Part shown: positions 158 through 15,689 of the stretch, piece by piece
Numbering within the stretch: the first letter of the stretch is position 1
How the letters are laid out: every line of letters starts with the position of its first letter
Virus record (IMG/VR): IMGVR_UViG_3300032562_000003
Location: 124,001 to 188,000 of that record
Reading direction: 5' to 3' (one strand)
Length of the DNA: 64,000 bases
Program-made: the position numbers and the translations under genes
Notes under the pieces: generated by a model
The model's input: only the letters and a program-made list of their open reading frames with translations
Told to the model about the DNA's origin: nothing
The model's database searches: none

Positions 158-736
158 TTACCTAGTGCGCTCATAACCAGTCACTGGATCAGTTATAACA
201 ATAGTTTTCCCACGCATCATGATATTACCTAAATGCATATCCATATTTACCTTAGGTAACGTAGCGATAAGATCACACGCTTCAGTTATACCAGGCTGCG
301 TCTGTTCTAAGACATACATAGCTTGAATATCACGCTCCAGATTGGCCGGCCAGCTTAGCAGCTTAGCACTATGCCATATATAACTCTCTAGCACACTCAC
401 CATATCGTACATGTCTCTAGTTCTAACTACAGGACTGAGCTTTTCCATTCGAATTGCGTTATAGTTATCATTGACTCTCATGAATGACCCACGAAACTTC
501 GGAAAATGCGGATTAGGATTGGACATGCACATTCTAACATATCTCGCATACGCTCTATCATCTGAGCTAACCAACTTTAATACGTAGGATTTGTCTTTTC
601 TCCACCAAACGTTAGCATACAACCCATGACCTAATTTTTGATATCCTGCTTTTTCTAGAATATCCTCAGCCGTCCGCTGATCGGGACGTGTTACTTCTGT
701 TAACTCTGATTCATTTAGGAGTTCTTGAATCTTCAT
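158..736 (-). CDS. protein kinase-like, resembling the T7 gp0.7 catalytic domain
   Basis: Gly-rich loop KLGHGLYANVW, beta3 Lys in YVLK, catalytic loop DMHLGNIM and ITDPV. These match motifs recalled for the T7 0.7 kinase (DMHSGNIM...ITDPV). Confidence 0.75.
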   Translation of the reverse strand: MKIQELLNESELTEVTRPDQRTAEDILEKAGYQKLGHGLYANVWWRKDKSYVLKLVSSDDRAYARYVRMCMSNPNPHFPKFRGSFMRVNDNYNAIRMEKLSPVVRTRDMYDMVSVLESYIWHSAKLLSWPANLERDIQAMYVLEQTQPGITEACDLIATLPKVNMDMHLGNIMMRGKTIVITDPVTGYERTR

Positions 737-738
737 GA

Positions 739-1320
739 CTATAACTTCTTGATCAGAACGCCGGCCGGTCCCAGCTTAAACGGAGAAACCTCAAATTTAT
801 CACCCAACACAGATTCTACATACTGCTGTAGTTCTTTTGTAGTAAATCCTTTTTGGTAAGTGCCGGTACTTGTAACAATGCTCATTGGCTCAGGACCCGG
901 TTTACCTTTAGCGTCAAGAACATCTCTTCCGCGCGTTGTAATCAGAGCTATGCCACCAGACTTCAACACTCTACCAATATGTTTTACGATTTCTTTTCTG
1001 GTCTTAGGTGGAACCACATTCAGTACATTGAAGTTCGTTACCTTTTCATAGCTGTCATTAGGAATGTCTGCTGCATGATCATACGTAGGCGTGAACTTAC
1101 CTTTAGGAAATGGTTCGTAAGTATCTGCACCAAGAATGTGACTACCGTGTCCTAACCCTGCACCGAAATCCAAAACTTTACCATGCGCAGAGTGAGTATC
1201 TAAATGTGCCTTAGCTTTTGTATAGGTAGGAGCGGTTCCACTAATCTGAGTTTTTTGTGATTTCTCAGGATCTGGAAATTCAAAATCTTCTACCGATTCA
1301 AATAGTTCTTGGATTTTCAT
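739..1320 (-). CDS. class I SAM-dependent methyltransferase
   Basis: Motif I VLDFGAGLG; downstream NVLNVV and LKSGGIALIT. Confidence 0.8.
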   Translation of the reverse strand: MKIQELFESVEDFEFPDPEKSQKTQISGTAPTYTKAKAHLDTHSAHGKVLDFGAGLGHGSHILGADTYEPFPKGKFTPTYDHAADIPNDSYEKVTNFNVLNVVPPKTRKEIVKHIGRVLKSGGIALITTRGRDVLDAKGKPGPEPMSIVTSTGTYQKGFTTKELQQYVESVLGDKFEVSPFKLGPAGVLIKKL

Positions 1321-1335
1321 GTATAACCGTTTACA

Positions 1336-1848
1336 TCATAACCCTGTGATTCTAGGATCACGGGCGGCGCCATATATCGGTTTATTGTTTCGAGACGGAC
1401 TTTTTATATTTGATTTCTTTGATATTCGGTACCTAATTTTTCTCAATGCTCTATCCAGTCGTTGGCGTATTCCTTCGCGGTTTATACCAAGCTTTTCTCC
1501 TATCTGCTCTAGAGACATTTCAGGGACTCCGATACCAAAAGCCATTCTAGCTAGGCGTTCTTCCAATGGATCTAGATCAAGCAAAATAGAATTGACTATT
1601 TTACGAACATCAGCAGCTTGGATGGCTGCGTTAGGATCTTCTTCAGAATCTGGAGTATTATAAGCTTTGTGTATTAGCGTAGTAATCTCTTGTGGATCGT
1701 CTACTATTTCCATTGGTTCTGGTAGTTGCGGTCCCTTACCAGAGAAAAAAGACCGTTGAAAGTTTGTGGGACCAAGCTTGCTGTCATCGTCAGGATTGTT
1801 GTTCTCATTGATTATGTCAATGTATGTTCTGAAAAGGTCTGCGCTCAT
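1336..1848 (-). CDS. stand-alone sigma70 region-4-like HTH protein
   Basis: LDPLEERLARMAFGIGVPEMSLEQIGEKLGINREGIRQRLDRALRKIR matches the RpoD region 4 pattern. No region 2 is present. Confidence 0.75.
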   Translation of the reverse strand: MSADLFRTYIDIINENNNPDDDSKLGPTNFQRSFFSGKGPQLPEPMEIVDDPQEITTLIHKAYNTPDSEEDPNAAIQAADVRKIVNSILLDLDPLEERLARMAFGIGVPEMSLEQIGEKLGINREGIRQRLDRALRKIRYRISKKSNIKSPSRNNKPIYGAARDPRITGL

Positions 1849-1866
1849 GAATAACCCCGTTTTAGT

Positions 1867-1874
1867 TATTTATC
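1867..1874 (-). promoter_or_regulatory. late promoter GATAAATA
   Basis: Variant of the T4 late promoter TATAAATA, 18 nt upstream of the 1848 start. The same octamer recurs before many late genes in the window. Confidence 0.7.
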
Positions 1875-1899
1875 GGTGTTTGCAGTTATCACCGTACAA

Positions 1900-2457
1900 T
1901 TAATCAACATACGGTAAATATGATTCCATCACAAAACCATTTCCACTAAACATTGGCCAAGCTGAGAAGTCTCCGGTATTCTCTAGTATGAGGCGCCAAT
2001 CTGTTGGATTAAAATAACTATAATAATCATCTAATGTATCTAACGAGAACGGTTCTTTCTTATTAGTTTTGACATTATACCAATACTTGTCAAATCTACT
2101 CAATCCTTTAACTACTTCCTGCATCATTTTAGAATGTACTTGCCCTATCATTAACGGTGAACGGTTCAGCCTAGTTTTAAAAAACCATAACATCATGGAT
2201 AAAAGTTTATTACCCCTGTGTTCAGGACTGACATAAACATCATCGATGATGTTATCATTATCAGATAGTGAGCAACAAGCAATTAGGGTTGTATCATTCC
2301 ACATAGAATAATAAATTCCGTCTTGTAAAACCTTATAGTTTTCTATGTCGGCTATATGCTTTCCGTGTTTATACCAATGATCTTTGTTCTTGTTTGCAAA
2401 TTGTTCTGCTTGTAGCGAAAGATCCGGACCTTTCATGGTCATTTCAGAAATTTTCAT
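1900..2457 (-). CDS. GNAT-family acetyltransferase-like protein
   Basis: Motif-A-like DDVYVSPEHRGNKL. Start moved from track position 2562 to ATG 2457 (MKISEM...), which removes the overlap with the HNH gene and matches the neighbouring MKIxE starts. Confidence 0.55.
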   Translation of the reverse strand: MKISEMTMKGPDLSLQAEQFANKNKDHWYKHGKHIADIENYKVLQDGIYYSMWNDTTLIACCSLSDNDNIIDDVYVSPEHRGNKLLSMMLWFFKTRLNRSPLMIGQVHSKMMQEVVKGLSRFDKYWYNVKTNKKEPFSLDTLDDYYSYFNPTDWRLILENTGDFSAWPMFSGNGFVMESYLPYVD

Positions 2458-2503
2458 TAGAGGTTTCCAGTATTCGGTTATTGGTTCTTCTTCGTTATTC
2501 AGT

Positions 2504-3283
2504 TTACACGTCTTTCTGTTTACAGTTATCACCGTGCCAACGAGAATAGTTACTGGGACCAAAAGTTTTATGACAATGTGGGCAAATTTTCTTTAAGTCT
2601 TCTCTGTTATTAGGATTATTTTTTGAGAACTCTTCTTTCATCCTAACAGCAACTTTATCACCGAATCCTTCTGGTTTAGATACACCTTTTTGCTTTATTG
2701 AACGTTTTATCTTTTGTTCTTCGCTCATTGGTCCCTTAGGTTTTCCCTTGAGTGCTAAACTTTGTTTCAATTTGGTTTCTTCAGAGCGTTTTTGTCCAGT
2801 TACTTTAGCGATTCTTTTTAACTGTCCTTCAGCCTGTTTAACAGGATCTATCTTTCTGTTGCGTGTTCTTTCTCTATGTTTTTCTAACTCTTCACCTTCA
2901 AGTTTTTGACCTTTGTTCCAAGCTGGTTTACCTTTCATTCTTTCTGAATGAGTTTTTGCGTGTGCTATCCGATGTTTTTCATATGCTCTAGTTATGATAC
3001 GTGAGTGGTATCTTTGCTGAAACTCATTTTCAGCGTTCATCCCATTAAACGCATATGACATCTTGACGCGGTCTTCTCCTTCAGTCATCTTTAACAATGC
3101 CCAATGACAAAGTGCGTGTTCTCTTCCTGTTAGCCACACCTTATTATCTTTATCATCATTGCCTCCCATTGAACTAGGAATAATATGATGTCGTTCTTTG
3201 TATTGCCCTTTTGGCAATGTACGATTTTTTGCTTTCTCAATAAGGAGCATGTAGTGTTTAGTATATTTATTTTCTTTGAACAT
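2504..3283 (-). mobile_element. free-standing HNH homing endonuclease with NUMOD3-like repeats
   Basis: HHIIPSSMGGNDDKDNKVWLTGREHALCH HNH core; Lys-rich GKPAWNKG, KRSEETK and PMSEEQK segments; C-terminal CPHC...WHGDNC. Confidence 0.85.
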
Positions 3284-3312
3284 AATATCACCTTTCAGTA
3301 ATATTATTTATC
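3284..3312 (-). promoter_or_regulatory. late promoter overlapping an RBS-sequestering hairpin
   Basis: Minus strand reads GATAAAT-AATATTACT-GAAA-GGTGATATT-ATG: a 9-bp stem (2 G-U pairs) with a GAAA tetraloop that buries the SD AAGGTG. Confidence 0.7.
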
Positions 3313-3333
3313 ATAACGGAATAAAAAGCAATA

Positions 3334-3361
3334 GAAAAGGGGACATTTCTGTCCCCTTTTC
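3334..3361 (-). terminator. Rho-independent terminator after the major capsid gene
   Basis: Perfect inverted repeat gaaaaggggaca-tttc-tgtccccttttc, with a GAAA loop and U-tract on the minus strand. Confidence 0.85.
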
Positions 3362-3402
3362 CACCTTGTATAACTTTCTAACAGTTATCACTGTAACGTG
3401 AT

Positions 3403-4599
3403 CTATTGGAATGTTAAATTTTGGACCGCAATTTCGCCAACGTAGTCAGCCGCATTACCAAACGAACTCGCGGTATTCGTCAATTCGATGTAGCCATATC
3501 TGGTCATGAATGAAACGACTGGCTCGAAAGTAGTCGGATCAAGAACGACGCCAGATGACATCAACGGAATGTATGGGCAGTAGAATGCTGCTGCGTCAGT
3601 TTCCGAAGAACCCTTGTAGCCTACGAGTACTGGCTGAGTGTCTGGAGCATAGCTGTTAACGAAAACGCGCATTGCACCGTTCAAAGTACCAACGAACTTA
3701 GTGTTAGTTGGGGCTTCGAAAGTACCTTCAGTAGTACGTGCGAAAGCTGAAGTAGTTGCTGACTGAAGAACAGTCAAGGAAGCTGGAGATACAACAGCCC
3801 AGTTACCTGCACCACGACGAGTGCGTTGTGCGATCAAGTTAGCAACACGGTTGATGAGTACTGCAAGAGCAGCGTGTTCGTCACCAACGTAAGTAGCTGT
3901 ACCTGATACAGTTGCTTGGTTGTAAGTATATTCAGTTGACGCAAGAGTTGCGAGTGAGAGCAAGATTTCTTGGTCGATTTCAGCAGTGATTTCTTGTGCA
4001 AGTGCTGCCATGATTTCTGCTTCAACGTCAATCCCGTGTTGTGATTGTGCGTCTTGTGCAGCTTCGAAAGTCCAGCGAGCTTGTAGCTTACGTGACTTTG
4101 CTTCAACAGCTTGTCTCAAGATTTGTACTGAGATTTGCTTTCCGCCATTACCTTCTAGAGAAGCAGTGTCGGCACCAGTGTAGTAGCTAGTGGAGGTTGC
4201 ATCATTAGGAACGCGAGAATAGGCTTGCGCGATCTTGAATGGTGAAAGTGCTTCTTCACCAGCAGTTACAGAAGTTGCTGCTGCTGAGTTGTCAGTCAAG
4301 CTATTTGCATAGCGAACACGAAGGGTGTGAATCTGACCGACTGGGCCGGTCATTGGTTGCACGCCAACAAGTTCGTTAGCAATAACAGTAGGCATAACAC
4401 GTCGAATTACTGGAAGAATAACGCGATTTAGAGTTGCGATATTACCAGCAGTTGTAGTGCCAGCTGAAGATTCAGCAAGAAGCTGCTTCTTCGTATTTTC
4501 AAACAATACGTTCATAGTTGAACGACGATTGCCTTTTAAGCCTTCAAGCAGGGCGCTTTTAGTTTCGTCCCAACGGCTTTCTAAGAGTACTTTTGACAT
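3403..4599 (-). CDS. gp23: major capsid protein (T4 gp23-like)
   Basis: LPVIRRVMPTVIANELVGVQPMTGPVGQIHTLR, AKSRKLQARWTFEAAQD, EITAEIDQEI, FYCPYIPL, TRYG; strong SD aggag. Confidence 0.97.
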   Translation of the reverse strand: MSKVLLESRWDETKSALLEGLKGNRRSTMNVLFENTKKQLLAESSAGTTTAGNIATLNRVILPVIRRVMPTVIANELVGVQPMTGPVGQIHTLRVRYANSLTDNSAAATSVTAGEEALSPFKIAQAYSRVPNDATSTSYYTGADTASLEGNGGKQISVQILRQAVEAKSRKLQARWTFEAAQDAQSQHGIDVEAEIMAALAQEITAEIDQEILLSLATLASTEYTYNQATVSGTATYVGDEHAALAVLINRVANLIAQRTRRGAGNWAVVSPASLTVLQSATTSAFARTTEGTFEAPTNTKFVGTLNGAMRVFVNSYAPDTQPVLVGYKGSSETDAAAFYCPYIPLMSSGVVLDPTTFEPVVSFMTRYGYIELTNTASSFGNAADYVGEIAVQNLTFQ

Positions 4600-4627
4600 T
4601 ATGTATATTCTCCTAAACTATGTCTAA

Positions 4628-5719
4628 TTAAAGCCCTGCCAGACGCTTGATGTCGATTACATTGTCTGTTTCAGACATATCGACTTCTTGTACTGTATTG
4701 GCAGTTTTATTACCAGTTGCTTCTACAATAACAGACTTAGAAGGCTTAGCTTCTGAACCTGTATTAAGAACGGCTGGCAAATACTTATCGAATGCGTTCT
4801 GTAGCTTTGCTGTTTGAACGCTTTCTAGTAAAGTCTTCATCACTTGAGCCTTTTCAGCGTTGAGACTTGACAATAGATTACCCATTACCTTCTCACGTTG
4901 ATTTGATTCTTTAATGATACGGACTTCACGATCCTTTGATTCTACTAACTTAGTTGCTTGTGCAAGCTTAGCTGTAGCTTCTGAGAGTTGACGGTCTTTG
5001 GCTGCAAGTGCCTTCATTACTTTACGATTTTCAGCCTTATCATTGAGATAAGTTACTGAGAATTCGCTAGCGAATGATTCGAAAATCTTGCGGCCGAAGC
5101 TGTTTTCTCTAGCAGATTTGATGTCTTCTTTAAGTTGTGATAGTTCACCCTTAAGTTGATTTCCAACAAGACCGCTAACCTTCTTAGCGCTTTCGGCAAT
5201 AAACTTTGCCTTGAGTGCTTCAAGTTGCTTGCGACCTTCTGCAACGAGCTTGACCTTAGCTTCTACTACTGCTTGTCTATCAACAGCGAATTCTTTGATT
5301 TCTCTTGATAGGGCGTGAACAATGAATTGTTCTAGCTTCTTTTGGTTTTCCATTTGAACCTTGCGATCAGCACGTAGTTCGCGGATTTCTTCGGCTAGCT
5401 TAGTAACCATGAAATCGTTGAACTTGGTTGCGTTTTCACGTAGTTTCAATTGAGACTTTACGCGGTCTTCGTTCATTGCTTGTCTTTCAGCGTTAAATTC
5501 TGCAATTTCTTCTGAAAGATTTTCTGTCATCATCTTATCTAGGGCTTCTACCATGACGTTACGATCATGCTCGTAACGTTGTGCAAATTCTTCATGAAGT
5601 TCTGCACGAACCTGAGCGCGAGCCTCAGTTAACTTAGATTCCCAGGCTTCGTTAAGTTCTCTGCCTACGTCTTCGTTAATGAGTCCACTTTCAAGTAATG
5701 GTTTGATAGCATCTAGCAT
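4628..5719 (-). CDS. gp22: prohead scaffold protein (gp22-like)
   Basis: Acidic coiled-coil protein between the protease and the capsid gene, with many L/I-x-E sites. Confidence 0.85.
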   Translation of the reverse strand: MLDAIKPLLESGLINEDVGRELNEAWESKLTEARAQVRAELHEEFAQRYEHDRNVMVEALDKMMTENLSEEIAEFNAERQAMNEDRVKSQLKLRENATKFNDFMVTKLAEEIRELRADRKVQMENQKKLEQFIVHALSREIKEFAVDRQAVVEAKVKLVAEGRKQLEALKAKFIAESAKKVSGLVGNQLKGELSQLKEDIKSARENSFGRKIFESFASEFSVTYLNDKAENRKVMKALAAKDRQLSEATAKLAQATKLVESKDREVRIIKESNQREKVMGNLLSSLNAEKAQVMKTLLESVQTAKLQNAFDKYLPAVLNTGSEAKPSKSVIVEATGNKTANTVQEVDMSETDNVIDIKRLAGL

Positions 5720-5735
5720 ATCTGTGATCCCTTTA

Positions 5736-6374
5736 TTATAACTTTAGATCATTGATGAGGCGTTTTACTTCCTCAGCCAAGTATCTTTGGACTTGTTTGT
5801 TGCCTTGAGCGTCTTTAGCAATCTCTAATACTTTATGTCCGTACTTCATGTTCTGAAGACCTTCATAAATTGCCTTAGGATATGCATTCGGAGCACTCGG
5901 TTGAGCAACGATATCTACAGTGATTATTTCAAAGTCACTGACTCGACCATCCATATCGTTAACGTTGCCGCTACCTCTACTGGACACACCGAGCTTCACT
6001 CCTGATTCCAACATTGTTCTTACGAGTTGACCCATTGGAGTAGGAAGAATCTTTAGTTTACCATAACCGTTTGGTCCGTCCATATACATATGAGTGATCA
6101 TATGAGAGACACGGTCTAGGTTTATTTTTAGATCGTCTGGGTGATCGACTTCACCAAGCACCGAGTAACCCTCGTGTATTTGCTTGTTGAGAGTATCTAC
6201 CGCAGTTTCAATTTCGTTGACGGGGTAAATACGCTCATTTGCGTTCTTAATTCCGCCCATGATGAAAATACCTTTCATGTAGAGCGTCTTAAGATCGGTG
6301 CCCTCATCCTTGACTGATTCGACCACCATACTAGCGCGATCAAAGGTCAAATTTTCTCTTAAATATAGAGCCAT
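5736..6374 (-). CDS. gp21: prohead protease (gp21-like)
   Basis: GIKNANERIY, LGEVDHP, LDRVSH, GVSSRGSG, DIVAQPSAPNAY. Start set at ATG 6374 (MALYLRE) behind the SD aagaggtg. Confidence 0.95.
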   Translation of the reverse strand: MALYLRENLTFDRASMVVESVKDEGTDLKTLYMKGIFIMGGIKNANERIYPVNEIETAVDTLNKQIHEGYSVLGEVDHPDDLKINLDRVSHMITHMYMDGPNGYGKLKILPTPMGQLVRTMLESGVKLGVSSRGSGNVNDMDGRVSDFEIITVDIVAQPSAPNAYPKAIYEGLQNMKYGHKVLEIAKDAQGNKQVQRYLAEEVKRLINDLKL

Positions 6375-6514
6375 TATAACACCTCTTTTGGTTTGCATTC
6401 AGAAGCGGGTTGTGGACTCACATACCTACCGTAAAGTGGCACGTGAGTCCAACCATAGAGATTCGGGACTGATTTTACGTTTGCCCGATTCTCACTTCTG
6501 ATGTACAAAGCCAT
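6374..6514 (-). other. 46-codon uORF inside a structured leader of gp21, with a duplicated gp21 start
   Basis: ATG 6514 gives MALYIRSEN...PKEVL, and its stop overlaps the gp21 start as TAATG. The region pairs into a three-way junction (see findings). Confidence 0.55.
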
Positions 6515-6529
6515 TTGCTCTCAGATTCC

Positions 6530-7360
6530 TTATCGTGTTGGTCTACGAGCAGGAGCACGCTTGCGTGATTCTGCTACTGGGCTCTTGGTGTTTTGACCGT
6601 CATCACCGTGCTTTGGCTTAGGTGCTGCGCTCAAATCTTGTGACTTCTTTCCTGGTACGTTCTTGAACTGTCCTGCGCCCTTAAGATCCTTAGTAGGAGG
6701 AGCAGTACGACCCTTTTCATTACCGTCAGCAAACTTTACTGGCTTGCTGTCCATTCCAGCTTGTCCTGAATTGAAAGTAGTTGGGCTCTTAGTGTTCTGA
6801 CCATTGTCACCGTGAGTTACAGAAACCTTCTGAAGCTGAACTGCTTCCATCATGTCTTCTGCATCTTCTTCGTCTTCGTCGCCGAAATCTTCTTCGTCGC
6901 CGAAATCTTCTTCGTCTTCGTCGCCGAAATCTTCTTCGTCGCCGAAGTCTTCTTCTTCGCCTGAACCCATGATTTCTTCAAACTCTGCCATCAATTGGTC
7001 GAGCTTGTCTTCGATGCGAATTACTGCATCTTCAATTTCTTCGTGTTCTTCGCTTTCGTCGTGTTCTGCTTCTAGGTCGTGAGTGAAGTCTTCACCGTCT
7101 TCTTCAGCTTCATCATCAAATTCGATGTCGCTTTCGTCTTCTTCGGTAACACCTTCTTCTTCGGCGTTGATTTCGTCAAGTAGATCACCTACTTGTCCGC
7201 CCATACCTTCGTCCATATCATCGTCATCTTCTTCGGCCATAATTGACTCAAAGATTTCGCGTGACTTTTCTACTACGATTTCGTGAAAGAGTTCTGATGC
7301 TTGCTCGTGATCTTCATTGATTACGAGGTTGATCATTTGTTCGTATTTTCTGATATCCAT
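6530..7360 (-). CDS. acidic prohead core protein (gp67-like position)
   Basis: Very Asp/Glu-rich and located between portal and protease. Start moved to ATG 7360 (MDIRKYEQ) behind aggagac. Confidence 0.7.
   Translation of the reverse strand: MDIRKYEQMINLVINEDHEQASELFHEIVVEKSREIFESIMAEEDDDDMDEGMGGQVGDLLDEINAEEEGVTEEDESDIEFDDEAEEDGEDFTHDLEAEHDESEEHEEIEDAVIRIEDKLDQLMAEFEEIMGSGEEEDFGDEEDFGDEDEEDFGDEEDFGDEDEEDAEDMMEAVQLQKVSVTHGDNGQNTKSPTTFNSGQAGMDSKPVKFADGNEKGRTAPPTKDLKGAGQFKNVPGKKSQDLSAAPKPKHGDDGQNTKSPVAESRKRAPARRPTR
6864..6947. repeat. 42-bp tandem duplication encoding FGDEEDFGDEDEED
   Basis: Two 42-nt units (6864-6905, 6906-6947) differing at one base, each built from 18-nt sub-repeats. Confidence 0.85.
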
Positions 7361-7482
7361 TAAATTGTCTCCTGAATAGAAATGGCTTTGTATATTATAC
7401 TTATGCAGTGAGACAAAAAACACCGTATTAAGTAGTCTTTTTTGCGTTTTTGGCGGTGCTATACAAAATAAATATGGAGAAA

Positions 7483-7550
7483 GATAAATAAAGATGTAGT
7501 TCACGGTGCGCTAACACCCAACTACTCTAATGCTATAAGGAGCAATCAGC
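7483..7550 (+). promoter_or_regulatory. late promoter plus conserved two-hairpin leader, copy 1
   Basis: GATAAATA aagat GTAGTT cac GGTG cgctaa CACC c AACTAC tcta ATGCT ataaggagcaatc AGC-ATG. Confidence 0.85.
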
Positions 7551-8186
7551 ATGTGTATTTATTGCGGCACTACCAAATACCGTAGAATCTACGAACAACA
7601 CAACGGACCTATTCCAAAAGAAGAGAATGATCGATCATATGAAATCCATCACATAGACGGTGATCATTCAAATAATGACCCGATAAACTTGAAGTGTGTA
7701 ACTATTCAAGAACATTATGATATTCATTATTCTCAAGGTGACTACGGTGCTTGTTTTTTACTAGGTAAAAAACAAAAAGTTTCACCTGAAAAACTATCCG
7801 ATTTGAATAGGCTACAGAACTTAACCAGAATACAGAATAATACCCACAACTTGATCAAAAGGGCAGATGGTAGTTCACATGCGTCGGACAGGGTAAAAAA
7901 CGGAACTCATCATTTCTTAGACAAAGAAGCCGCAAGTCTCAGAGGAAAAAAACGAGTAGAAAACGGAACTCATCATTTCTTGAAACAAAACAGGTCACTT
8001 GCTTTTGTAGATAAAGTTAATCAACCTGTATATAAATGGAAACACGTAAAAACTGGTGAAATAGAAATTTTAACAGCAAAAGATTTCATGATCAAACATG
8101 ATTTATCAAAGTATCAAGGGAACATAAGTTGGTTAATAAGTGGTAAACATAAATCGGTTAAAGGTTGGATAGTAATACGAGATTGA
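7551..8186 (+). mobile_element. free-standing HNH homing endonuclease, antisense to the head operon
   Basis: EIHHIDGDHSNNDPINLKCVTIQEHYDIH HNH motif; C-terminal NUMOD1-like GNISWLISGKHKSVKGW. Confidence 0.85.
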
Positions 8187-8244
8187 CGAGTTTCTCCTAT
8201 ATAAATAGGACAAACGTCTCCTTCATATTCAGGTTTTACGATAA

Positions 8245-8478
8245 CTAGATGCTAGGTGCCCCGGCCGCAGCGTCAGGTTTAGCACCATACTGTTTACGTA
8301 ACTTTTCTAGGTACTGTTGCTTCTCGAATGTTCTTACATCCAGCATTCTACGAAGCTTTCGAATCTGTCTAAGCGTCAACTTAGTCTTGCGTGACGTTCT
8401 ATACACAGGTCTGCTGTTGTCAGAATTTACATCCTGTAGACCATTGACCGGCGGACTAAAAATATCTTCTAAAAGCAT
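8245..8478 (-). CDS. small basic protein downstream of portal (possible prohead core, gp68-like position)
   Basis: 77-aa ORF with SD gaggg and its own late promoter (8495-8502); RKTKLTLRQIRKLRR. Confidence 0.65.
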   Translation of the reverse strand: MLLEDIFSPPVNGLQDVNSDNSRPVYRTSRKTKLTLRQIRKLRRMLDVRTFEKQQYLEKLRKQYGAKPDAAAGAPSI

Positions 8479-8492
8479 GACACCCTCATCAA

Positions 8493-8517
8493 TATATTTA
8501 TCATTATGATAAATATA
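8493..8517. promoter_or_regulatory. back-to-back late promoters forming an 11-bp inverted repeat
   Basis: TATATTTATCA-tta-TGATAAATATA, with GATAAATA on the minus strand (8495-8502) and the plus strand (8508-8515). Confidence 0.75.
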
Positions 8518-8577
8518 AACGTAGTTCGCGGGTCAGCAAACCCCAACTACTCTAATGCTATCTTAGGAAACATCAGC
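8508..8577 (+). promoter_or_regulatory. late promoter plus conserved two-hairpin leader, copy 2
   Basis: GATAAATA taaac GTAGTT cgc GGGT cagcaa ACCC c AACTAC tcta ATGCT atcttaggaaacatc AGC-ATG. Confidence 0.85.
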
Positions 8578-9418
8578 ATGACTATTTATCTATACAAGAA
8601 AACCCATAACATAACTGGATTAAAATACTTAGGTAAAACCGCACAATCTAATCCATATAAGTATCCAGGATCCGGAAAAATGTAGAGGTCGCATATAAAA
8701 ACACATGGGTATGATGTTACTACTGAAATATTACGAGAGTGTCACTCTAAAGAAGAGGTAGCAGAATGGGGTTATACTACTCTAAACTGTGGAATATAGT
8801 AGACGAGCGGGATAAGAATGGGAAGAAAACGTGGGCTAATCTAAAGTTTGAAGAGGGCGACGGAGGTGCAACTGTTTTTGGTGACAGCCATCATTCTAAA
8901 ACTATTGAATTTAAAAATAGAATTGATCACGCATGGACTCCCGAAAAAAGAAAAAAACAAGGTGATCTGTCTCGATCACGATTTTCGCACATGTCTACTG
9001 AAGACAAAAAACATATAAGAAAAAAAGCAATCGACACTAGAACTAAAAATAACCCAGATTGGAGGAAAGACTTATCTGATAGAATGTTAGGGAAAACAAT
9101 CCTTCAAAATCTAAAGAAGTAATAGAAAAGATAGCAGAAAGTAAATCAAACTGGAATGACTCCTTTCGAGAATATGTAATCAGTAAAAATTCTGGAATTA
9201 ATCATTACAGAAACAACCCTAATTACAAATCAACTCAATTTGGAAAGGGGCACCCTAATTATAACCCCAATGTATACTCATTTAAAAATAAAAATACACT
9301 AGAAGAAGTTAGAATGACAGTGTTTGATTTTATAAAAACATACAACCTACATCAAGGAAATGTAAGTTTATTAATGTCTGGAAAAAGAAAATCTGTACGC
9401 GGGTGGATGTTATCTTAG
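8578..9418 (+). pseudogene. decayed GIY-YIG (Seg-like) homing endonuclease
   Basis: Starts MTIYLYKKTHNITGLKYLGKT, nearly identical to 17975..18682. TAG at 8683-8685 replaces the conserved Trp. Two 1-nt losses in G runs (8768-8771, 9090-9092). The third frame ends ...GNVSLLMSGKRKSVRGWMLS*. Confidence 0.85.
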
Positions 9419-12400
9419 AAGCCGCCGCCCGGAGTTGCTCCAGGTCCGCCCATTGCTGATGGTTCTGCTGCTACATCGCCGCCTGAAACTGGCCCAGCAG
9501 TTTCCGGTGCTTCACCTTCCTGTTCGGAATTCTCAATCTGATCCGCAGTATTCATATCAGCATCAAAGTCTCCGCTGGATACACCTATGTTTCTAAGATC
9601 AGCACCCTGTGGTTCGCTAGTGACTTCTTCTCTGTTTTCTTCTTCCCAGAGCTTTTCGTTCTTCTTGATTTCTTCTTCTGAAAGACCTAAGAATCTTTCA
9701 AGGTTGAAGCGCTTTGACATGTATGGAATAGCATCCATAGCAGAGAACACTGATACTCGTGCATTATCTAACTCACTCTGACGGTAGGCTGCAAAGTTTT
9801 GCGGAGGATTAAAAGTTAGTTGGAAAAGACTAGTATCAATATTGAAGCCTCTCCAACGCAAGAATAACTTAAACTCTTCATCCAGCTTCAAGCAGATATA
9901 ATTCTGAAGTCTTTCACAGTATTGATTGAATCTAAATTCTTGAATCATCGCTGTGCCGACACGACCATCGTTCATGGGTGTAGTATTGTCGTCGGGACCA
10001 GTTGGTAAGTATGAAGACGGAACACGAAGTCCACGGGCAAGACGATTATTGAAGTACTTCAAGTCATCGATTTCACCTAGATTTTGTCCGCCCGGCAGAA
10101 CTTCAACAGATGATCCACGTCCTTCTGCTGTTACAGGGAAGAAATAGTCTTCGTTCATTGAGTTCTTTACAAATATACCAGCGTCGATAGCAAACGTATG
10201 ATAATCATGCCATTGATGACGCCCATCAATAGTTATAGTTCCAGTGTCTCTGTTACTTACCTTTTCAATCTTTACAATTCTATGGTTAAAATTGTCAATT
10301 TCTTTTACAAAATGTTTCCAATTTTTATATCCAAATTTAGAAAGAAGTCTGTCTAACTTACTGTACCCAAACTTATTAAAGTCTATTTTACATTGTGCAT
10401 TTTTATAATCCAATGGTGATGAATTAGCATTCTTAACCAAACTCAATAAGGTGCTATCATTATCACACCACTCCAGTACCTTATTTTTATTTTTATTACC
10501 TTGCTTAACCTGTTCTGCTACTCGTTGTACCATATCAAATGTCAAGATCAGTGGTTGATTTTTAATTTTAACTCTCTTTTCACAATTTGCACGAACTTTT
10601 TCCAAACCAACTGGATTACGATCAAAGTACTCTTTGCGCACTTGTTGCATACTAGATTTATATTTAGCCGCAGTTATAGGATCGTTCTTTCTAGCCCATA
10701 CAGCTTTTTGTTGCGCTGCTCTAATGTTCCAAAGACCGATTAGACGTTCTTCTTCGGTCATATTTTCCCAATTTTCTTTTAGAGTGGCCGAAGTTTTAGA
10801 CGTTATCTGCTTTCTATATTCATCTGACATCGTTTCCCAAAATTCTTTTTTCTGTGCAGCATGATATAAAACATGATCTGTTTTGTTCATGAATACTAGG
10901 TTTTTGGGTTCGTTATTAAATCTATTGTTATCTTTATGATGAATAACTGTTCTAGGTGCCATTGCGTATTCAGTTAGATAATTAAATTCTTGGTGCTTTC
11001 CTAAATTTCTAAAGAAATCCCCGACCATCCGATGAGTCCAAATCCATTTTTTACTCTCATGGTCCCATACCTGCTGGTAATCATTGGTTTTTCCGCCTGA
11101 AATATTTTTATTTTGAGTATTGAACGCAATTAGACTATCATTTTCAGTTAAATGTTGTGCTTCTACAAAGCCTTTATCAAACACAGGTATTTTATGGTCT
11201 GGTGTACAAACTAATGTTTTGCCGTTATCAAAAGTAAGTTTAATTACTTCTGTGTTTTTTCTAGTAATGCCAGCCCAATTAATTACTCCAGGTACTACTC
11301 TACCGGTTACTGGATCGCAGCTATACGCCCAATTTTCTTTTCCAGCTTCAAATTCAGTGATTATTTCTTGTAAAGACAAGGTTCTTCCATCTAAAAGTGG
11401 AATTTTAGTTTCTAAATCCAAACATAAAGGGTTATAAGAGGCGTCCACAATCGACTGTCCACCGTACGGTGAGGGAATTCTACGCTGGTGAATTTCGTTC
11501 TTTACTCGCTCAACAAATGCCATTGCTAAGTGACTTGGCATGTTACCAACATCGATCTTAAACATTCTACGTTCAGGTGCACGCTGCACACGATAGATAA
11601 GAACCGCATCTTCTAGTAGTTCTTTTTGCTTATAGACCTTAAAGATGTTTTCCAGTATAGATTGACCAAAAGGCCAAAATCTATCTAATCCTTCAGTTAA
11701 GGACAAGTGTACAATATGCTTACTGTCTACTGCTGATTCACTCTGACCTAATGTAAAACGACTTCCAGTCGTATTATATGGCATTGCCGGAACAGTGTAC
11801 GGGGTGTTAGTTCCGCCGCCACTACCACCTAAACCAGTTGCTGGGTTCGCAGCAAAGTCAGTATTGGTTTTCTGTGCTACTGATAAGTTTTGTAGATTGA
11901 TATTGATGTCTTTGATGACATACTGTTCCGGCTTCTTGCCCTCAGATTCGTTGACGATAACCTTAATGACCTTAACCATATCAACCCAGTATAGCTTAAA
12001 GTTTTCTGGGTCACGAACAAATACTTGGTCACCATACTTGACAACGTTTCTGAAAATCTTAAACATTCTCACGTCGAATTCATTTAGCTTGCACCACTGT
12101 TGTAGCTGCTTACCTAGCAATTCTACTTCACGTGGCGTAGGTTCTCCTTTGAATTCAAACGCAAACGGTGTCTTGTTATGTTCATTTCGCTGTGTAGAGA
12201 ACTCTGCTATGATGTCCAAACAAGCGTTGATTTCAGCATCAACGTCCATCATTTCGTATTGATTGTATCGTTCGATTCTGTTGGGGTGACCAGTGTAGAC
12301 TTCCGGTAGTCTACTTTGATAGTTTTTGTATCCAAATTCAGTATTGTTCCAACCACCAGTTGGCATACCGTTTTGTCCAGGCGACCCATTCCATGCTCCG

Positions 12401-12474
12401 GCATTACTGCTCGCACCAGAGATAGGACTCGAAACACCACTCTTGTTTAGAAATTTCTTCTTGTATCCAGACAT
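9415..12474 (-). CDS. gp20: portal protein (gp20-like) containing an intein
   Basis: RYNQYEMMDVDAEINACLD, LLEDAVLIYRVQRAPERRMFKIDVGNMP, EDYFFP, VEVLPGGQNLGEIDDLKYF, RGLRVPSSYL. Confidence 0.96.
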   Translation of the reverse strand: MSGYKKKFLNKSGVSSPISGASSNAGAWNGSPGQNGMPTGGWNNTEFGYKNYQSRLPEVYTGHPNRIERYNQYEMMDVDAEINACLDIIAEFSTQRNEHNKTPFAFEFKGEPTPREVELLGKQLQQWCKLNEFDVRMFKIFRNVVKYGDQVFVRDPENFKLYWVDMVKVIKVIVNESEGKKPEQYVIKDININLQNLSVAQKTNTDFAANPATGLGGSGGGTNTPYTVPAMPYNTTGSRFTLGQSESAVDSKHIVHLSLTEGLDRFWPFGQSILENIFKVYKQKELLEDAVLIYRVQRAPERRMFKIDVGNMPSHLAMAFVERVKNEIHQRRIPSPYGGQSIVDASYNPLCLDLETKIPLLDGRTLSLQEIITEFEAGKENWAYSCDPVTGRVVPGVINWAGITRKNTEVIKLTFDNGKTLVCTPDHKIPVFDKGFVEAQHLTENDSLIAFNTQNKNISGGKTNDYQQVWDHESKKWIWTHRMVGDFFRNLGKHQEFNYLTEYAMAPRTVIHHKDNNRFNNEPKNLVFMNKTDHVLYHAAQKKEFWETMSDEYRKQITSKTSATLKENWENMTEEERLIGLWNIRAAQQKAVWARKNDPITAAKYKSSMQQVRKEYFDRNPVGLEKVRANCEKRVKIKNQPLILTFDMVQRVAEQVKQGNKNKNKVLEWCDNDSTLLSLVKNANSSPLDYKNAQCKIDFNKFGYSKLDRLLSKFGYKNWKHFVKEIDNFNHRIVKIEKVSNRDTGTITIDGRHQWHDYHTFAIDAGIFVKNSMNEDYFFPVTAEGRGSSVEVLPGGQNLGEIDDLKYFNNRLARGLRVPSSYLPTGPDDNTTPMNDGRVGTAMIQEFRFNQYCERLQNYICLKLDEEFKLFLRWRGFNIDTSLFQLTFNPPQNFAAYRQSELDNARVSVFSAMDAIPYMSKRFNLERFLGLSEEEIKKNEKLWEEENREEVTSEPQGADLRNIGVSSGDFDADMNTADQIENSEQEGEAPETAGPVSGGDVAAEPSAMGGPGATPGGGF
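10162..11424 (-). mobile_element. intein (421 aa, residues 351-771) with an HNH endonuclease domain
   Basis: Begins CLDLETKIPLLDG and ends HTFAIDAGIFVKN followed by Ser. Contains block B LVCTPDHKIPV and internal HNH VIHHKDNNRFNNEPKNL...H. Removing it restores contiguous YNPL|SMNEDYFFP. Confidence 0.92.
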
Positions 12475-12506: not shown

Positions 12507-15500
12507 CTATGCCATTGAATTACGTAATAACTTAGTCTGTGTACCGTGACTACTTTCAAGGACGGAGATTACTTTATCTAATTTATTTGCCATCATTCCA
12601 AACATTTCCGCTGTAATTTCTCCTGAATTACCAGAAGAATGAGGGTGTGCGGTTTTACCTTTAACTATAGTTTCTATTGCGGCCGCGTCAGTTGCAGGTG
12701 TTTTAGCTAATTTCATAAGCAAAGAATCTGGTCCTAAAGGTGCAACCAGTTCGCCGCCGTGCAATGTAGCCGGATATCCAGACAATGGCCCATCAAACAT
12801 TCCACCGTTTCTAGCTTGTAATTTTCCTTGTCTAAGTAGTGAAATATCCTCTTGCGCCCGACGCCCTACTTGTCCTGCCCACTTACTAGAAGATAATTGT
12901 GCGGCCGCGCCTTCAACATCACCAGCCGAAAGTGCAGCAGTTAAATGTGGCCACTTTTTGTACCAAGACGGGCCCATATTAAATGTCAAGTCTGTTAGCG
13001 CAGCTTGGCCTTTTTCATTTAATTTGTTGAATCCCGGAATATTGCTAGCAGCTTGTTTATGCTTGCCGAAATCCTGCTGGTAAAGTTTCATGACTTCATC
13101 CTTAGAGAACTCACGATTCCATTCAGGTGGTAAAGTACTACCGTCACCGATCAAATGACCCACCCCAATTGTCCATTTACCTAAGGAGTCTTTATATGGT
13201 TTAGTACGCACTCCTTCATGTCCTGCAATTAGATCCATTACCCAATTTCCAAATGACCCAATTGCACCTGCGGCGGCGCCACCGGCTTTTCCTAAGAAAC
13301 TTCCAGCTGCGCCCAACGCGCCGCCTGCTGCATGACCAGCTGCGCCCAACGCGCCTCCTGCTGCATGACCAGCTGCGCCCAACGCGCCTCCTGCTGCATG
13401 ACCAGCTGCGCCCAACGCGCCTCCTACTGCACCCACTGCTCCTGCCCCTAAAGCGGCGCCTGCTGCCATAGCTCCGCCGCCGCCGCCGGATGCTCCACCG
13501 CCTCGGAAGCTACCCATAGCAGTAGCGAACTTCAAGAATGCATCAGTGTTCTTGTCTGCATTAGGACCAAAATCCATCTTAGTGAACTTAAGGAATGCTT
13601 CAGTCGGGCTGTCTTGACCGAATAACTTGCTTAATCCGGAAACTGCTATATCTTTTATTGCTGTTCCCAAGCTTGGTCCGCCTTTATACTTAGACATCGC
13701 TTCCGAAAATGCTATTAATGCATCGGCGTTGGTTTTTACTTTGGCACCGTCGATAGGGAATGATTGGAAATACATTAGTTGCTTAGCAGCAATCTTTAGC
13801 GGATCTTCTTTACCTCCTCCAGTAAAGAAGTTGGCCATTCTACCCATTGCTCCAGCAACTTGTCCAGCGCCTATAGCAACGATGCCAACGCCTAATGCCG
13901 CCATACCTAAACCGGCTTTTTTAAGATTTTCGCCGTTAATGTCATTAAACGCTTTTAAACTCTTTCCCAAGCTTGGAAGCATTACGCTTATTAAGCCGCC
14001 GCCTATGGCCAAACCAGCACCGATACCGGTGATGATCGCAGCAAGAGCAACCCCTAATGCCACGCCGCCCTCCATAACCGCCGGCCCGGCCTTACCTGCT
14101 GCTGCTAGTGCTTCTACTAGACCCATAAGCATTCCGCCGCCGGCGGCTTTACTCATACCACCTACTGCCTCAGCGGCGCCGGCTGCTCCTTTCGGAGCAC
14201 CGCCTCCTAATAGACCCGCAAGTCCACCTGCTTTTCCTAATGCTGCTTTTCCTAAGTTAAATGTAACTAGCCCAAGAGCTCCTGCAAGTGCTACACCGGC
14301 TAAGGTTGCCAGAGTTAAACCATGTTGGAATGGATTCATACTATTAATTAACTCATCCATTCCAACTTTAGCTTTGATTTCTGCATTAGTTAACGCATTT
14401 CTCGCATCTTGTGCTGGATCTTCTGGTCCATTTTCAGCTACACTAGCTGGTTCATATCCAGCTAATTGGTTTGCTGTAGTGAGTGTTCCTGTATTAATAT
14501 TAGCCGCAGAAGCTAATCCTGAATTAACAGACAATGCTGTACTATTTTTAGTTGCAAAGTCTAATGTTTTATCAACCAAATCTTTTTGGAAGTCACCGGC
14601 CTCTTTAGTACCAAACGTTCCTGCGTTGACGGCTGACGCCGTTTTTGCATAATCCTGACCAGTACCTTGAAGTGCTAGAGCTTTTTGGAAAGGCCCGGAA
14701 ACAAAACCTTGTGTTATCTGTTGAGCCATGGCGGCGGCGGAGTCGGCGCCGCCTGTTCTTTGTGCAACTTGAACTGCGTTTTGCGCACTATCTATTTGCT
14801 TTTTTATAGCGTCCTTTTCAGCTTGAGTCTTTGCTGCGTCCATTTCTTTGTGTTTTTTAGCAAGAAATAGCTGGAATTGTATATTAGCCATCGACGCGGC
14901 TTGAGTTTTCTTCTCTTGTTCTACAGATTCTCCGGTAGCTGCGGACATCTCATTTAAATTTTTGATGTATGCAAGGGATGCACCTTGCAGACCACCGGTA
15001 GTCTTACTCAAATCTCGCAACGAAACACCACCTTCAGACATTAAGGTGTTGTAGTCAGCCTGAGCCTGCATTAGTTCGTCTACGCCATATCCCAATCTTT
15101 GAAATTGATTTCTAACCTTTTCGGTTACATGAACCTGTTCTGCAAACTTCTTAGTAGAATCGGCGGCTCCATTACCTAATGCATTGAAGGAATTACCCAT
15201 GCTTTGCATAGGTTTGAGCATTTTTTGAAAATCACCTGAGGCTAAACCAGCATTATTAGCCATCTTTTGAAGTTCGTTAGTGGTGAAAGTGTTAACAGCA
15301 CCTAACCTACTGATACCATCAGAAAATTTTAGTAAATTATCAGTTTGGGCGGTCGCTGCACTCACTACTTTAGTAAATGCAGCAGCTACTAAACCTGCAG
15401 CAACCCCAACGGGCCCCAAAGCTTTTCCTACTTGTATTGCGGCGGTTCCCATGCTATCTAAAGCTGATGTATATTTGTTTAACTCACCTGTACCGTTAAG

Positions 15501-15689
15501 TAATGCTTTAGCGAAGCTACCGGCAGCATCGTCTAACGATCTGAATGCTTTGTTGACGCTACCTACGCGAGTTGAAGCGTTATCAGAAGATTCGCTGAGA
15601 TTTTTTATTGCAGGAGAGGCGTCCCGGCTAATAATATCTGATAACTCTTTAAGCTGTGCGCTTAGCTCTGCTGCGATTTCTGGATCCAT
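12507..15689 (-). CDS. tape-measure-like protein with a C-terminal GH24 (T4-type) lysozyme domain
   Basis: Long Ala/Gly-rich helical protein. HEGVRTKPYKDSLGKWTIG shows the lysozyme E-x8-D-x5-T triad. Confidence 0.8.
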   Translation of the reverse strand: MDPEIAAELSAQLKELSDIISRDASPAIKNLSESSDNASTRVGSVNKAFRSLDDAAGSFAKALLNGTGELNKYTSALDSMGTAAIQVGKALGPVGVAAGLVAAAFTKVVSAATAQTDNLLKFSDGISRLGAVNTFTTNELQKMANNAGLASGDFQKMLKPMQSMGNSFNALGNGAADSTKKFAEQVHVTEKVRNQFQRLGYGVDELMQAQADYNTLMSEGGVSLRDLSKTTGGLQGASLAYIKNLNEMSAATGESVEQEKKTQAASMANIQFQLFLAKKHKEMDAAKTQAEKDAIKKQIDSAQNAVQVAQRTGGADSAAAMAQQITQGFVSGPFQKALALQGTGQDYAKTASAVNAGTFGTKEAGDFQKDLVDKTLDFATKNSTALSVNSGLASAANINTGTLTTANQLAGYEPASVAENGPEDPAQDARNALTNAEIKAKVGMDELINSMNPFQHGLTLATLAGVALAGALGLVTFNLGKAALGKAGGLAGLLGGGAPKGAAGAAEAVGGMSKAAGGGMLMGLVEALAAAGKAGPAVMEGGVALGVALAAIITGIGAGLAIGGGLISVMLPSLGKSLKAFNDINGENLKKAGLGMAALGVGIVAIGAGQVAGAMGRMANFFTGGGKEDPLKIAAKQLMYFQSFPIDGAKVKTNADALIAFSEAMSKYKGGPSLGTAIKDIAVSGLSKLFGQDSPTEAFLKFTKMDFGPNADKNTDAFLKFATAMGSFRGGGASGGGGGAMAAGAALGAGAVGAVGGALGAAGHAAGGALGAAGHAAGGALGAAGHAAGGALGAAGSFLGKAGGAAAGAIGSFGNWVMDLIAGHEGVRTKPYKDSLGKWTIGVGHLIGDGSTLPPEWNREFSKDEVMKLYQQDFGKHKQAASNIPGFNKLNEKGQAALTDLTFNMGPSWYKKWPHLTAALSAGDVEGAAAQLSSSKWAGQVGRRAQEDISLLRQGKLQARNGGMFDGPLSGYPATLHGGELVAPLGPDSLLMKLAKTPATDAAAIETIVKGKTAHPHSSGNSGEITAEMFGMMANKLDKVISVLESSHGTQTKLLRNSMA
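13303..13431. repeat. 33-bp tandem repeat (about 3.9 units) encoding AAGGALGAAGH
   Basis: Units start at 13303, 13336, 13369 and 13402 and are nearly identical at DNA level. Confidence 0.9.

Follow-up and report, generated by a model that had tools for sequence, protein, structure and literature searches.

IPI, IPII and IPIII, which are internal proteins of phage T4, are small basic proteins that share one short N-terminal leader, the capsid targeting sequence (CTS; MKTYQEFIAE), on otherwise unrelated bodies. The leader ends in [L/I]-x-E, a gp21-family protease is encoded beside the scaffold and capsid genes, and the locus is polymorphic among relatives. We analyzed a 64,000-nucleotide (nt) stretch, here called the window, of an environmental jumbo phage from a lake (positions 124,001 to 188,000 of the 258.9-kb IMG/VR record IMGVR_UViG_3300032562_000003). 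Four consecutive genes on its minus strand, a cassette close to the major capsid gene, encode a kinase-like enzyme, an S-adenosylmethionine (SAM)-dependent methyltransferase, a sigma-70 region 4 protein and a GNAT-like acetyltransferase. With a probability of roughly 0.65, these four proteins are head cargo with T4-like leaders that would be docked, cut and injected. The locus would then be a variant of the T4 CTS and internal-protein system with the same leader logic and protease, and its novelty would lie in the cargo classes, the two leader types and a polymorphic capsid-side locus, in a clade of uncultured jumbo phages. It differs from T4 in that the predicted cargo consists of recognisable enzymes and a DNA- or RNA polymerase-binding module, in the two types of leader, and in the position directly behind the capsid gene. 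The phage itself is a relative of Asteriusvirus and Eneladusvirus of about 260 kb, not a member of Tevenvirinae.

T4 Alt is a late-made enzyme that is loaded into the head, trimmed by gp21 and injected, and that modifies host RNA polymerase (PMC9026906, PMC5512222). The cassette resembles it in having enzymes as cargo, and a sibling cassette includes a leader-bearing protein with a lead toward the ADP-ribosyltransferase (ART) fold; however, the activities here would be phosphorylation, methylation and acetylation, with no ART in the window. In phiKZ and SPN3US, a gp21-related protease cuts many head-internal proteins after Glu, and these proteins are ejected (PMC9026906); the sites there have the form S/A/G-x-E, however, and long propeptides stand against a portable leader of 10-15 residues here. 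Packaging and injection are predicted for polyvalent proteins; their domains include kinases and GNATs, and solo versions are found beside structural genes (Iyer et al. 2017, PMC5512222). Together with P1 DarB and MuF-type head proteins, they offer a parallel for packaged, injected enzymes (kinases, GNATs, methylases), and the methyltransferase family of the cassette is one of the domains found there. We located this domain within CRP-3 gp36 (1292 amino acids [aa], between portal and coat, also with a cell-wall hydrolase domain), within Myrna gp97, a neighbor of the major head gene, and, in a marine protein, as a fusion with ART-PolyVal. In contrast to such proteins, those of the cassette are separate, small and single-domain, each with its own leader rather than part of one giant polypeptide, and the methyltransferase is not a DarB-type adenine methylase. 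T7 gp0.7, which has a kinase core homologous to that of the cassette kinase (PHROG 15752), phosphorylates host proteins and is reported, in work cited in PMC11895373, to disarm defences. It is an early protein with a C-terminal shut-off domain, and the T7-like kinase homologues have more than 318-325 aa, whereas the cassette kinase has 192 aa, consists of the core only, bears a leader and lies in a late-looking operon.

N-terminal leaders of the cassette proteins

An earlier reading of this DNA (the original prediction) had described four consecutive late-oriented genes within 158-2457. All four open reading frames (ORFs) lie on the minus strand, and both their coordinates and their first residues were recovered from the sequence. 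The kinase gene (158-736) begins MKIQELLNES, the methyltransferase gene (739-1320) MKIQELFES, the sigma region 4 gene (1336-1848) MSADLFRTYIDIINEN, and the GNAT gene (1900-2457) MKISEM. Their predicted leader ends, with the cut marked by a bar, are LNE|S, LFE|S, INE|N and ISE|M, respectively. Leader A, M-K-I-x-E-L-hydrophobic-(x)-E, is carried by the kinase (MKIQELLNE|S, with a possible second cut at LTE|V) and the methyltransferase (MKIQELFE|S). Leader B, MSxxLFRxYIDIINE, is carried by the sigma region 4 protein (MSADLFRTYIDIINE|N), and the GNAT protein has a short leader, MKISE|MTMKG.

The leaders resemble known T4 substrates. T4 gp24 starts MAKINELLRES and is annotated as gp21-cleaved, and gp22, gp21, gp67 and gp68 likewise start with [L/I]-x-E strings (NC_000866). 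The consensus of 29 close homologues of the kinase, M-R-I-[SNT]-E-L-L-[NT]-E-S, is a near-match to the gp24 propeptide: MAKINELLRE|S in gp24 compares with MKIQELLNE|S in the cassette kinase and MRINELLNE|S in the family, although gp24 is a shell protein and the leader here is on soluble enzymes. The propeptide lost from T4 gp24 has exactly ten residues. Leader A and the T4 CTS have Q-E-hydrophobic-hydrophobic-x-E in common. In leader B, which ends Y-I-D-I-I-N-E|N, Y, a hydrophobic residue, I and E stand at CTS positions Y4, F7, I8 and E10; targeting requires CTS residues 4 and 7, and processing requires residues 8 and 10 (PMC9026906).

The L/I-x-E-S strings that had been pointed out in the neighboring head proteins were found in the sequences of the capsid protein (VLLES, LLAES), the scaffold (PLLES, KIFES) and the acidic core protein (EIFES). 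Among the approximately 47 genes of the window, starts of the form MKI.E were confined to cassette genes. A pattern of hydrophobic-hydrophobic-x-E-small occurred within the first 17 residues of 7 of 47 genes, all inside the head block at 158-8478, and in 1.5% of internal 17-mers; one of the seven, MFKEN of an HNH endonuclease gene, is probably a false positive. A chance MK start was rejected on these N-terminal statistics. The kinase and methyltransferase have their first six residues, MKIQEL, in common, in different codons, behind unrelated upstream DNA and without further similarity. A recent duplication of 5' ends was rejected on the differing codons. A text search of the literature for the leader strings returned unrelated papers only.

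Homologues of the cassette proteins indicate that the leaders are additions to otherwise complete domains. The kinase homologues have a start of the form M[KR]-hydrophobic-x-[ED]-hydrophobic in 45 of 64 cases, and those of Autographiviridae (T7-like) have no leader and unrelated N-termini. The conserved part of the methyltransferase starts near residue 14 (PDPEKSQKTQ), and homologues align from residue 14-18 on. The family core starts PPxxNAQKTQ, and 90 homologues have varied N-terminal extensions, of which a few are leader-like (MRAQEFIVEV, MRKYINIVTES, MKFKQLFKES). Approximately 61-63 of 135-140 members of the GNAT family start M[KR][LI]x[ED]L..E|MTM[KR], and the start of leaderless members, MTM or MR.G, coincides with the predicted cut. 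The leader was of low confidence and outside the fold in the AlphaFold2 (AF2) models of both the kinase and the methyltransferase.

Leaders on unrelated proteins

We scanned IMG/VR for the leader B motif FRxY[IV]DxINE and obtained 65 stretches, 64 of them evaluable. The motif stood at residues 6-9 of an ORF in all 64, and the proteins behind it fell into 15 families without mutual similarity. One of them, a 179-aa protein from locus L025, has its first 15 residues in common with the sigma region 4 protein and nothing else. Genes for the capsid, scaffold, protease, portal or fibres of this clade lay within a few kb at 30 of the 64 loci. One leader stands before differing bodies, and the bodies are therefore exchanged at the locus behind the capsid gene. 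The T-even internal-protein locus has the same exchange pattern.

For leader A, a scan with MKIQEL[LF]xE gave 36 matches, about 28 of them at ORF starts. The strict leader A pattern was found on 40 ORFs with 17 body families, and on approximately 1% of 831 ORFs in loci that had not been selected for leader A. The bodies, which often formed tandem arrays, included a major capsid protein, a dCMP deaminase that also has DUF6321, lysozymes of GH19 and proteins with DUF6267. DUF6321 recurred as a C-terminal domain both on leader-bearing proteins, namely the dCMP deaminase and a 280-aa protein (L106 1982-2773; L133 3840-4682), and on methyltransferase homologues (P0098 and relatives). A further motif, S-AG-x-IA-x-V, lies behind predicted cleavage sites; it was seen at residues 43-56 of the capsid protein of the window and in several proteins of other lineages that are otherwise unrelated (L133 8241-8435, L106 3279-4724, L120 4589-6601).

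The chances seem to us evenly divided on a broader proposal, namely that the two portable leaders are address labels used over a large clade of freshwater jumbo phages to load interchangeable single-domain effectors into capsids at a polymorphic capsid-side locus, with leader A also in other lineages. If so, the leaders alone would be enough to flag dozens of metagenomic protein families, so far uncharacterised, as effectors injected for the first minutes or as proteins of counter-defence. Effectors with such a label would include a pre-made kinase of the gp0.7 type, a METTL6-like methyltransferase, a GNAT, a decoy formed by sigma region 4 and, in a sibling phage, a mini-ART.

Folds and predicted activities

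Each cassette protein has a single domain, and the four folds named in the original prediction held up, three of them through Pfam matches above threshold (Methyltransf_23, Sigma70_r4, Acetyltransf_1) and the kinase through PHROG and an AF2 model. The kinase-like enzyme (192 aa) corresponds to a truncated N-terminal core of the T7 gp0.7 type. It had no match in our local copy of Pfam, but it matched PHROG 15752, 'protein kinase; inhibitor of host transcription', and tblastn returned kinases of Autographiviridae. The Gly-loop, K54, D166, N171 and D183 were invariant over 51 aligned homologues. The model had a predicted local distance difference test (pLDDT) score of 90, with residues 1-18 of low confidence, and in Foldseek it matched protein kinases and aminoglycoside phosphotransferases (APH). 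Sequence searches of PDB with the kinase and the methyltransferase gave no matches.

The methyltransferase (193 aa) is a SAM-dependent enzyme, as had been claimed, and its assignment can be refined to a class I, METTL6-like or small-molecule type that is not recognisable as a DNA methylase. Its AF2 model (pLDDT 93.6, first 10 residues low) had METTL6 and generic small-molecule or protein SAM methyltransferases as its best PDB matches, the METTL6 likeness being a lead only. We rejected a DNA methylase on the lack of a DPPY/NPPY or cytosine-C5 motif and on the nearest structures, which are non-DNA enzymes.

The sigma region 4 protein (170 aa) is composed of leader B, an acidic Pro-rich linker of about 60 aa and a stand-alone sigma-70 region 4 helix-turn-helix. 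Pfam Sigma70_r4 matched at residues 91-139, and comparison with RpoD matched region 4 alone (RpoD residues ~572-640). The claim of a region 4 was correct in that respect; the protein is not a sigma factor, however, because it is without region 2. In a search of 5.8 billion proteins it had two relatives only. For the GNAT-like acetyltransferase (185 aa), the leads from Atlas were GNAT throughout, and tblastn against cultured phages gave no match.

The sibling cassette mentioned above (L087) has an extra 120-aa protein on its minus strand (2102-2464) with the leader MRDLMIIIEN and a WHGT motif. It had no Pfam match, and the likeness of its Atlas model to the folds of ADP-ribosyltransferases (PARP, DarT, Arr) is a lead only.

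Head genes and transcription of the cassette

The head genes upstream of the cassette are all on the minus strand, and among their products the capsid, scaffold, acidic core and gp67-like proteins have the motif of the leaders. The gp23-type major capsid protein (3403-4599; Pfam Gp23 E = 1.7e-97) has predicted sites at MSKVLLE|S and QLLAE|SSAG, and in comparison with T4 gp23 the predicted LLAE|S cut falls three residues ahead of the first aligned segment. The scaffold (4628-5719), in synteny with Serratia phage BF and Escherichia phage G17, starts MLDAIKPLLE|S and has an internal KIFE|S. Next is a prohead serine protease of the gp21 family (Peptidase_S77, 5736-6398; Pfam S77 E = 2.5e-25), which is 33% identical to T4 gp21 over the catalytic His/Ser segments, with DHP and GVSSRG conserved. 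The acidic prohead core protein (6530-7360; PHROG 15696, virion structural protein) starts MDIRKYEQMINLVINE|D and has EIFE|S. A small gp67-like core protein of 77 aa (8245-8478) has clade orthologues that start MKLFE|MFD; these starts (L008 5036, L012 5039, L126 4664-4903) are of the same kind as the GNAT leader MKISEM.

The minus-strand order runs from an intein-split portal through the 77-aa gp67-like protein, acidic core, S77 protease and scaffold to the gp23-type capsid gene, followed by a terminator, HNH, GNAT, sigma-70 region 4, methyltransferase, kinase, an 89-aa ORF and, in the flank (L003), tail fibres. The original prediction had placed the cassette next to the capsid gene. It is nearby but not directly adjacent, with an HNH/NUMOD3 homing endonuclease gene (2504-3283, minus strand; Pfam HNH and NUMOD3), which is not cargo, between the two. 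In a near-identity search of phages, the capsid gene was approximately 74% identical in DNA to that of Asteriusvirus and Eneladusvirus over part of the gene only, and these phages have the capsid gene without the cassette behind it. A kinase orthologue on a 344-kb contig again lies behind a capsid gene and HNH gene, and a distant kinase orthologue lies a few genes away from a T4-type portal.

A late-promoter-like motif, GATAAATA, occurred in 14 copies, compared to 4.5 expected, and stood 5-60 nt ahead of structural genes in the window. In the clade loci it preceded 67 non-redundant gene starts, nearly all of them portal, gp67-like, fibre or endonuclease genes. One minus-strand copy, at 1867-1874, lies 18 nt upstream of the sigma region 4 gene and would drive that gene, the methyltransferase, the kinase and the 89-aa ORF in turn; another, at 3305-3312 (minus strand), lies upstream of the HNH gene and would drive it and then the GNAT gene. 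A strong intrinsic terminator with a 16-bp stem and a T-run (3330-3365, minus strand; L003 5372-5407) directly behind the capsid gene divides the capsid transcript from the cassette, and no terminator was found within the cassette. Late expression of the cassette is likely, because copies of the motif lie ahead of it, the terminator lies behind the capsid gene and none lies inside.

Proposed mechanism and alternative explanations

The cassette proteins would be synthesized late, from promoters of the GATAAATA type. Their leaders would then dock them to the scaffold or core of the assembling prohead, where the neighboring gp21-family protease would cut after [L/I]-x-E and free the mature enzymes within the capsid. 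At the next infection, the enzymes would exit with the DNA and act ahead of any phage gene expression. The region 4 module would most simply be a decoy or competitor for contacts of sigma-70 region 4 (beta-flap, -35 DNA, region-4 binders). We infer all steps after synthesis, and the targets, as we do late expression. It is hard to see what a gp0.7-type kinase would do late in infection unless it is stored for the next cell; the same applies to a free region 4 module. The original prediction's view of the starts as T4-style capsid-targeting or propeptide sequences is backed by the likeness to T4, the modularity, the leaderless homologues, the adjacent protease and core proteins, the late-promoter-like motif and the presence of the methyltransferase domain in polyvalent proteins of head modules elsewhere. 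The roles in host takeover or anti-defence that it suggested are putative.

Several points count against this mechanism. The leader of the window's GNAT protein has just 5 residues. The cleavage specificity of the protease is taken from T4 by assumption, and the late promoter is a motif with no mapped start. The one RNA run found, a lake-water metatranscriptome, contained fragments of the capsid gene only (3424-4457), some from this phage but mostly from relatives 90-95% identical, and nothing on the cassette; the library may include DNA. These capsid-gene reads indicate that the clade was present, and possibly active, in the sample. The gap between capsid and fibre genes is a hypervariable island in which most genes have no leader (80 relatives), so position by itself means little. 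Around one tagged GNAT homologue there are many tiny ORFs and no head module; T4 internal-protein genes are also scattered. Most leader A loci of the collection scan belong to other phage lineages whose head proteases are not visible, and Pfam searches with the proteins neighboring these arrays did not find a gp23-type capsid gene. For the cultured relatives Sharanji, PA5oct and RaK2, the literature on virion proteomics and processing held nothing on propeptides or on the cassette proteins.

More than one other scenario was weighed. The leaders could load the proteins into proheads where, or in the producing cell, they act by modifying capsid, core or DNA, or they could be part of a degraded core, without being effectors for the next host. 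T4 core proteins with a like N-terminus are degraded and expelled (PMC9026906), and the computed results say nothing on ejection. In known systems, however, the targets of a gp0.7-type kinase and of a sigma region 4 module belong to the host, and the catalytic residues are strongly conserved. T4 internal proteins and Alt, and likewise the polyvalent proteins in which this methyltransferase domain is found, are moreover ejected or predicted to be. We therefore consider action confined to the prohead or the producing cell unlikely.

An ordinary accessory island of cytoplasmic enzymes is improbable as well. In such an island, the similar starts would come from cassette recombination or from selection on translation starts rather than from targeting. 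The hypervariable gap with its mostly untagged genes is what would be expected, MK starts are frequent in A+T-rich phages, the tagged GNAT noted above lies in an early-looking region, and recombination is suggested by a direct repeat of 17-19 nt, GGTGATAACTGYAAACA, at the joints of the cassette (1877-1896, 2517-2536 and 3382-3395). Yet the residues that the leaders have in common are written in different codons behind unrelated upstream DNA, and leader B was N-terminal in 100% of cases on 15 bodies. At their ends the leaders have the same [L/I]-x-E as do the proteins of capsid, scaffold and core, and they match T4 substrates. A bias in starts would not keep 10-15 residues, nor would it be absent in T7-like homologues.

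That the leaders are some other pro- or docking peptides, for zymogen control of toxic enzymes or for anchoring to neck or fibres outside the capsid, is very improbable: fibres and decoration proteins, too, combine a conserved N-terminus with variable bodies, the locus adjoins fibre genes and the small acidic ORF that accompanies the kinase could be an inhibitor, but enzymes dependent on ATP, SAM and acetyl-CoA are useless outside a cell, the leaders are like T4 core-targeting sequences and unlike the fibre N-termini of the clade (MAxEPFNS..GYSVGIPP), and a gp21-type protease is thought to be active only within proheads.

To our knowledge, very few injected proteins are known beyond those of T4, P1, N4 and the phiKZ group. 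Injected proteins are prime candidates for host takeover and counter-defence because they are active ahead of any reading of phage genes. If the leaders of the cassette work as in T4, a gp0.7-type kinase could be delivered ready-made rather than expressed early, and time-zero interference with host RNA polymerase by a free sigma region 4 would be of a new kind. The leaders would also provide a search key of 10-15 residues for injected effectors, with about 30 unrelated body families already found, and could be put to use as portable tags for packaging when phages other than T4 are engineered.

Other features of the locus

The repeat GGTGATAACTGYAAACA follows the capsid, HNH and GNAT genes, and is also present at 7624-7640 of L014 and in L087. 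It has the look of a joint at which cassettes could be exchanged by recombination or homing.

The 89-aa acidic ORF (MKDNEVIEILDDG...) begins within the window, on the minus strand at 1-135, and runs past its edge; it accompanies the kinase in relatives. An acidic ORF of 80-89 aa (MKDNEVIEILDDGTVYYFDL...) adjoins the kinase gene in the two relatives examined (L003 8602-8871; L126 9750-9992), downstream of the kinase in the window and upstream in L126. The small acidic protein may act together with the kinase or inhibit it.

Free-standing homing-endonuclease genes had a conserved upstream leader of about 60 nt that starts GATAAATA and ends ...CTAATGCTAnAAGGAGCAATCAGC-ATG. Copies were seen at 7483-7550 (plus strand), 18683-18750 (minus strand) and 8508-8590, and this leader may be a shared regulatory or RNA element.

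A single ORF of 6297 aa (35156-54049, plus strand) has GATAAATA ahead of it, and neither half of it had a match in Pfam. The T4-type portal gene (9415-12474, minus strand) encodes 1019 aa and contains an intein with an HNH endonuclease at about residues 359-740; the portals of relatives have 575-597 aa. The adjoining gene (12507-15689, minus strand) encodes a 1060-aa protein with a phage lysozyme domain at residues 824-946.

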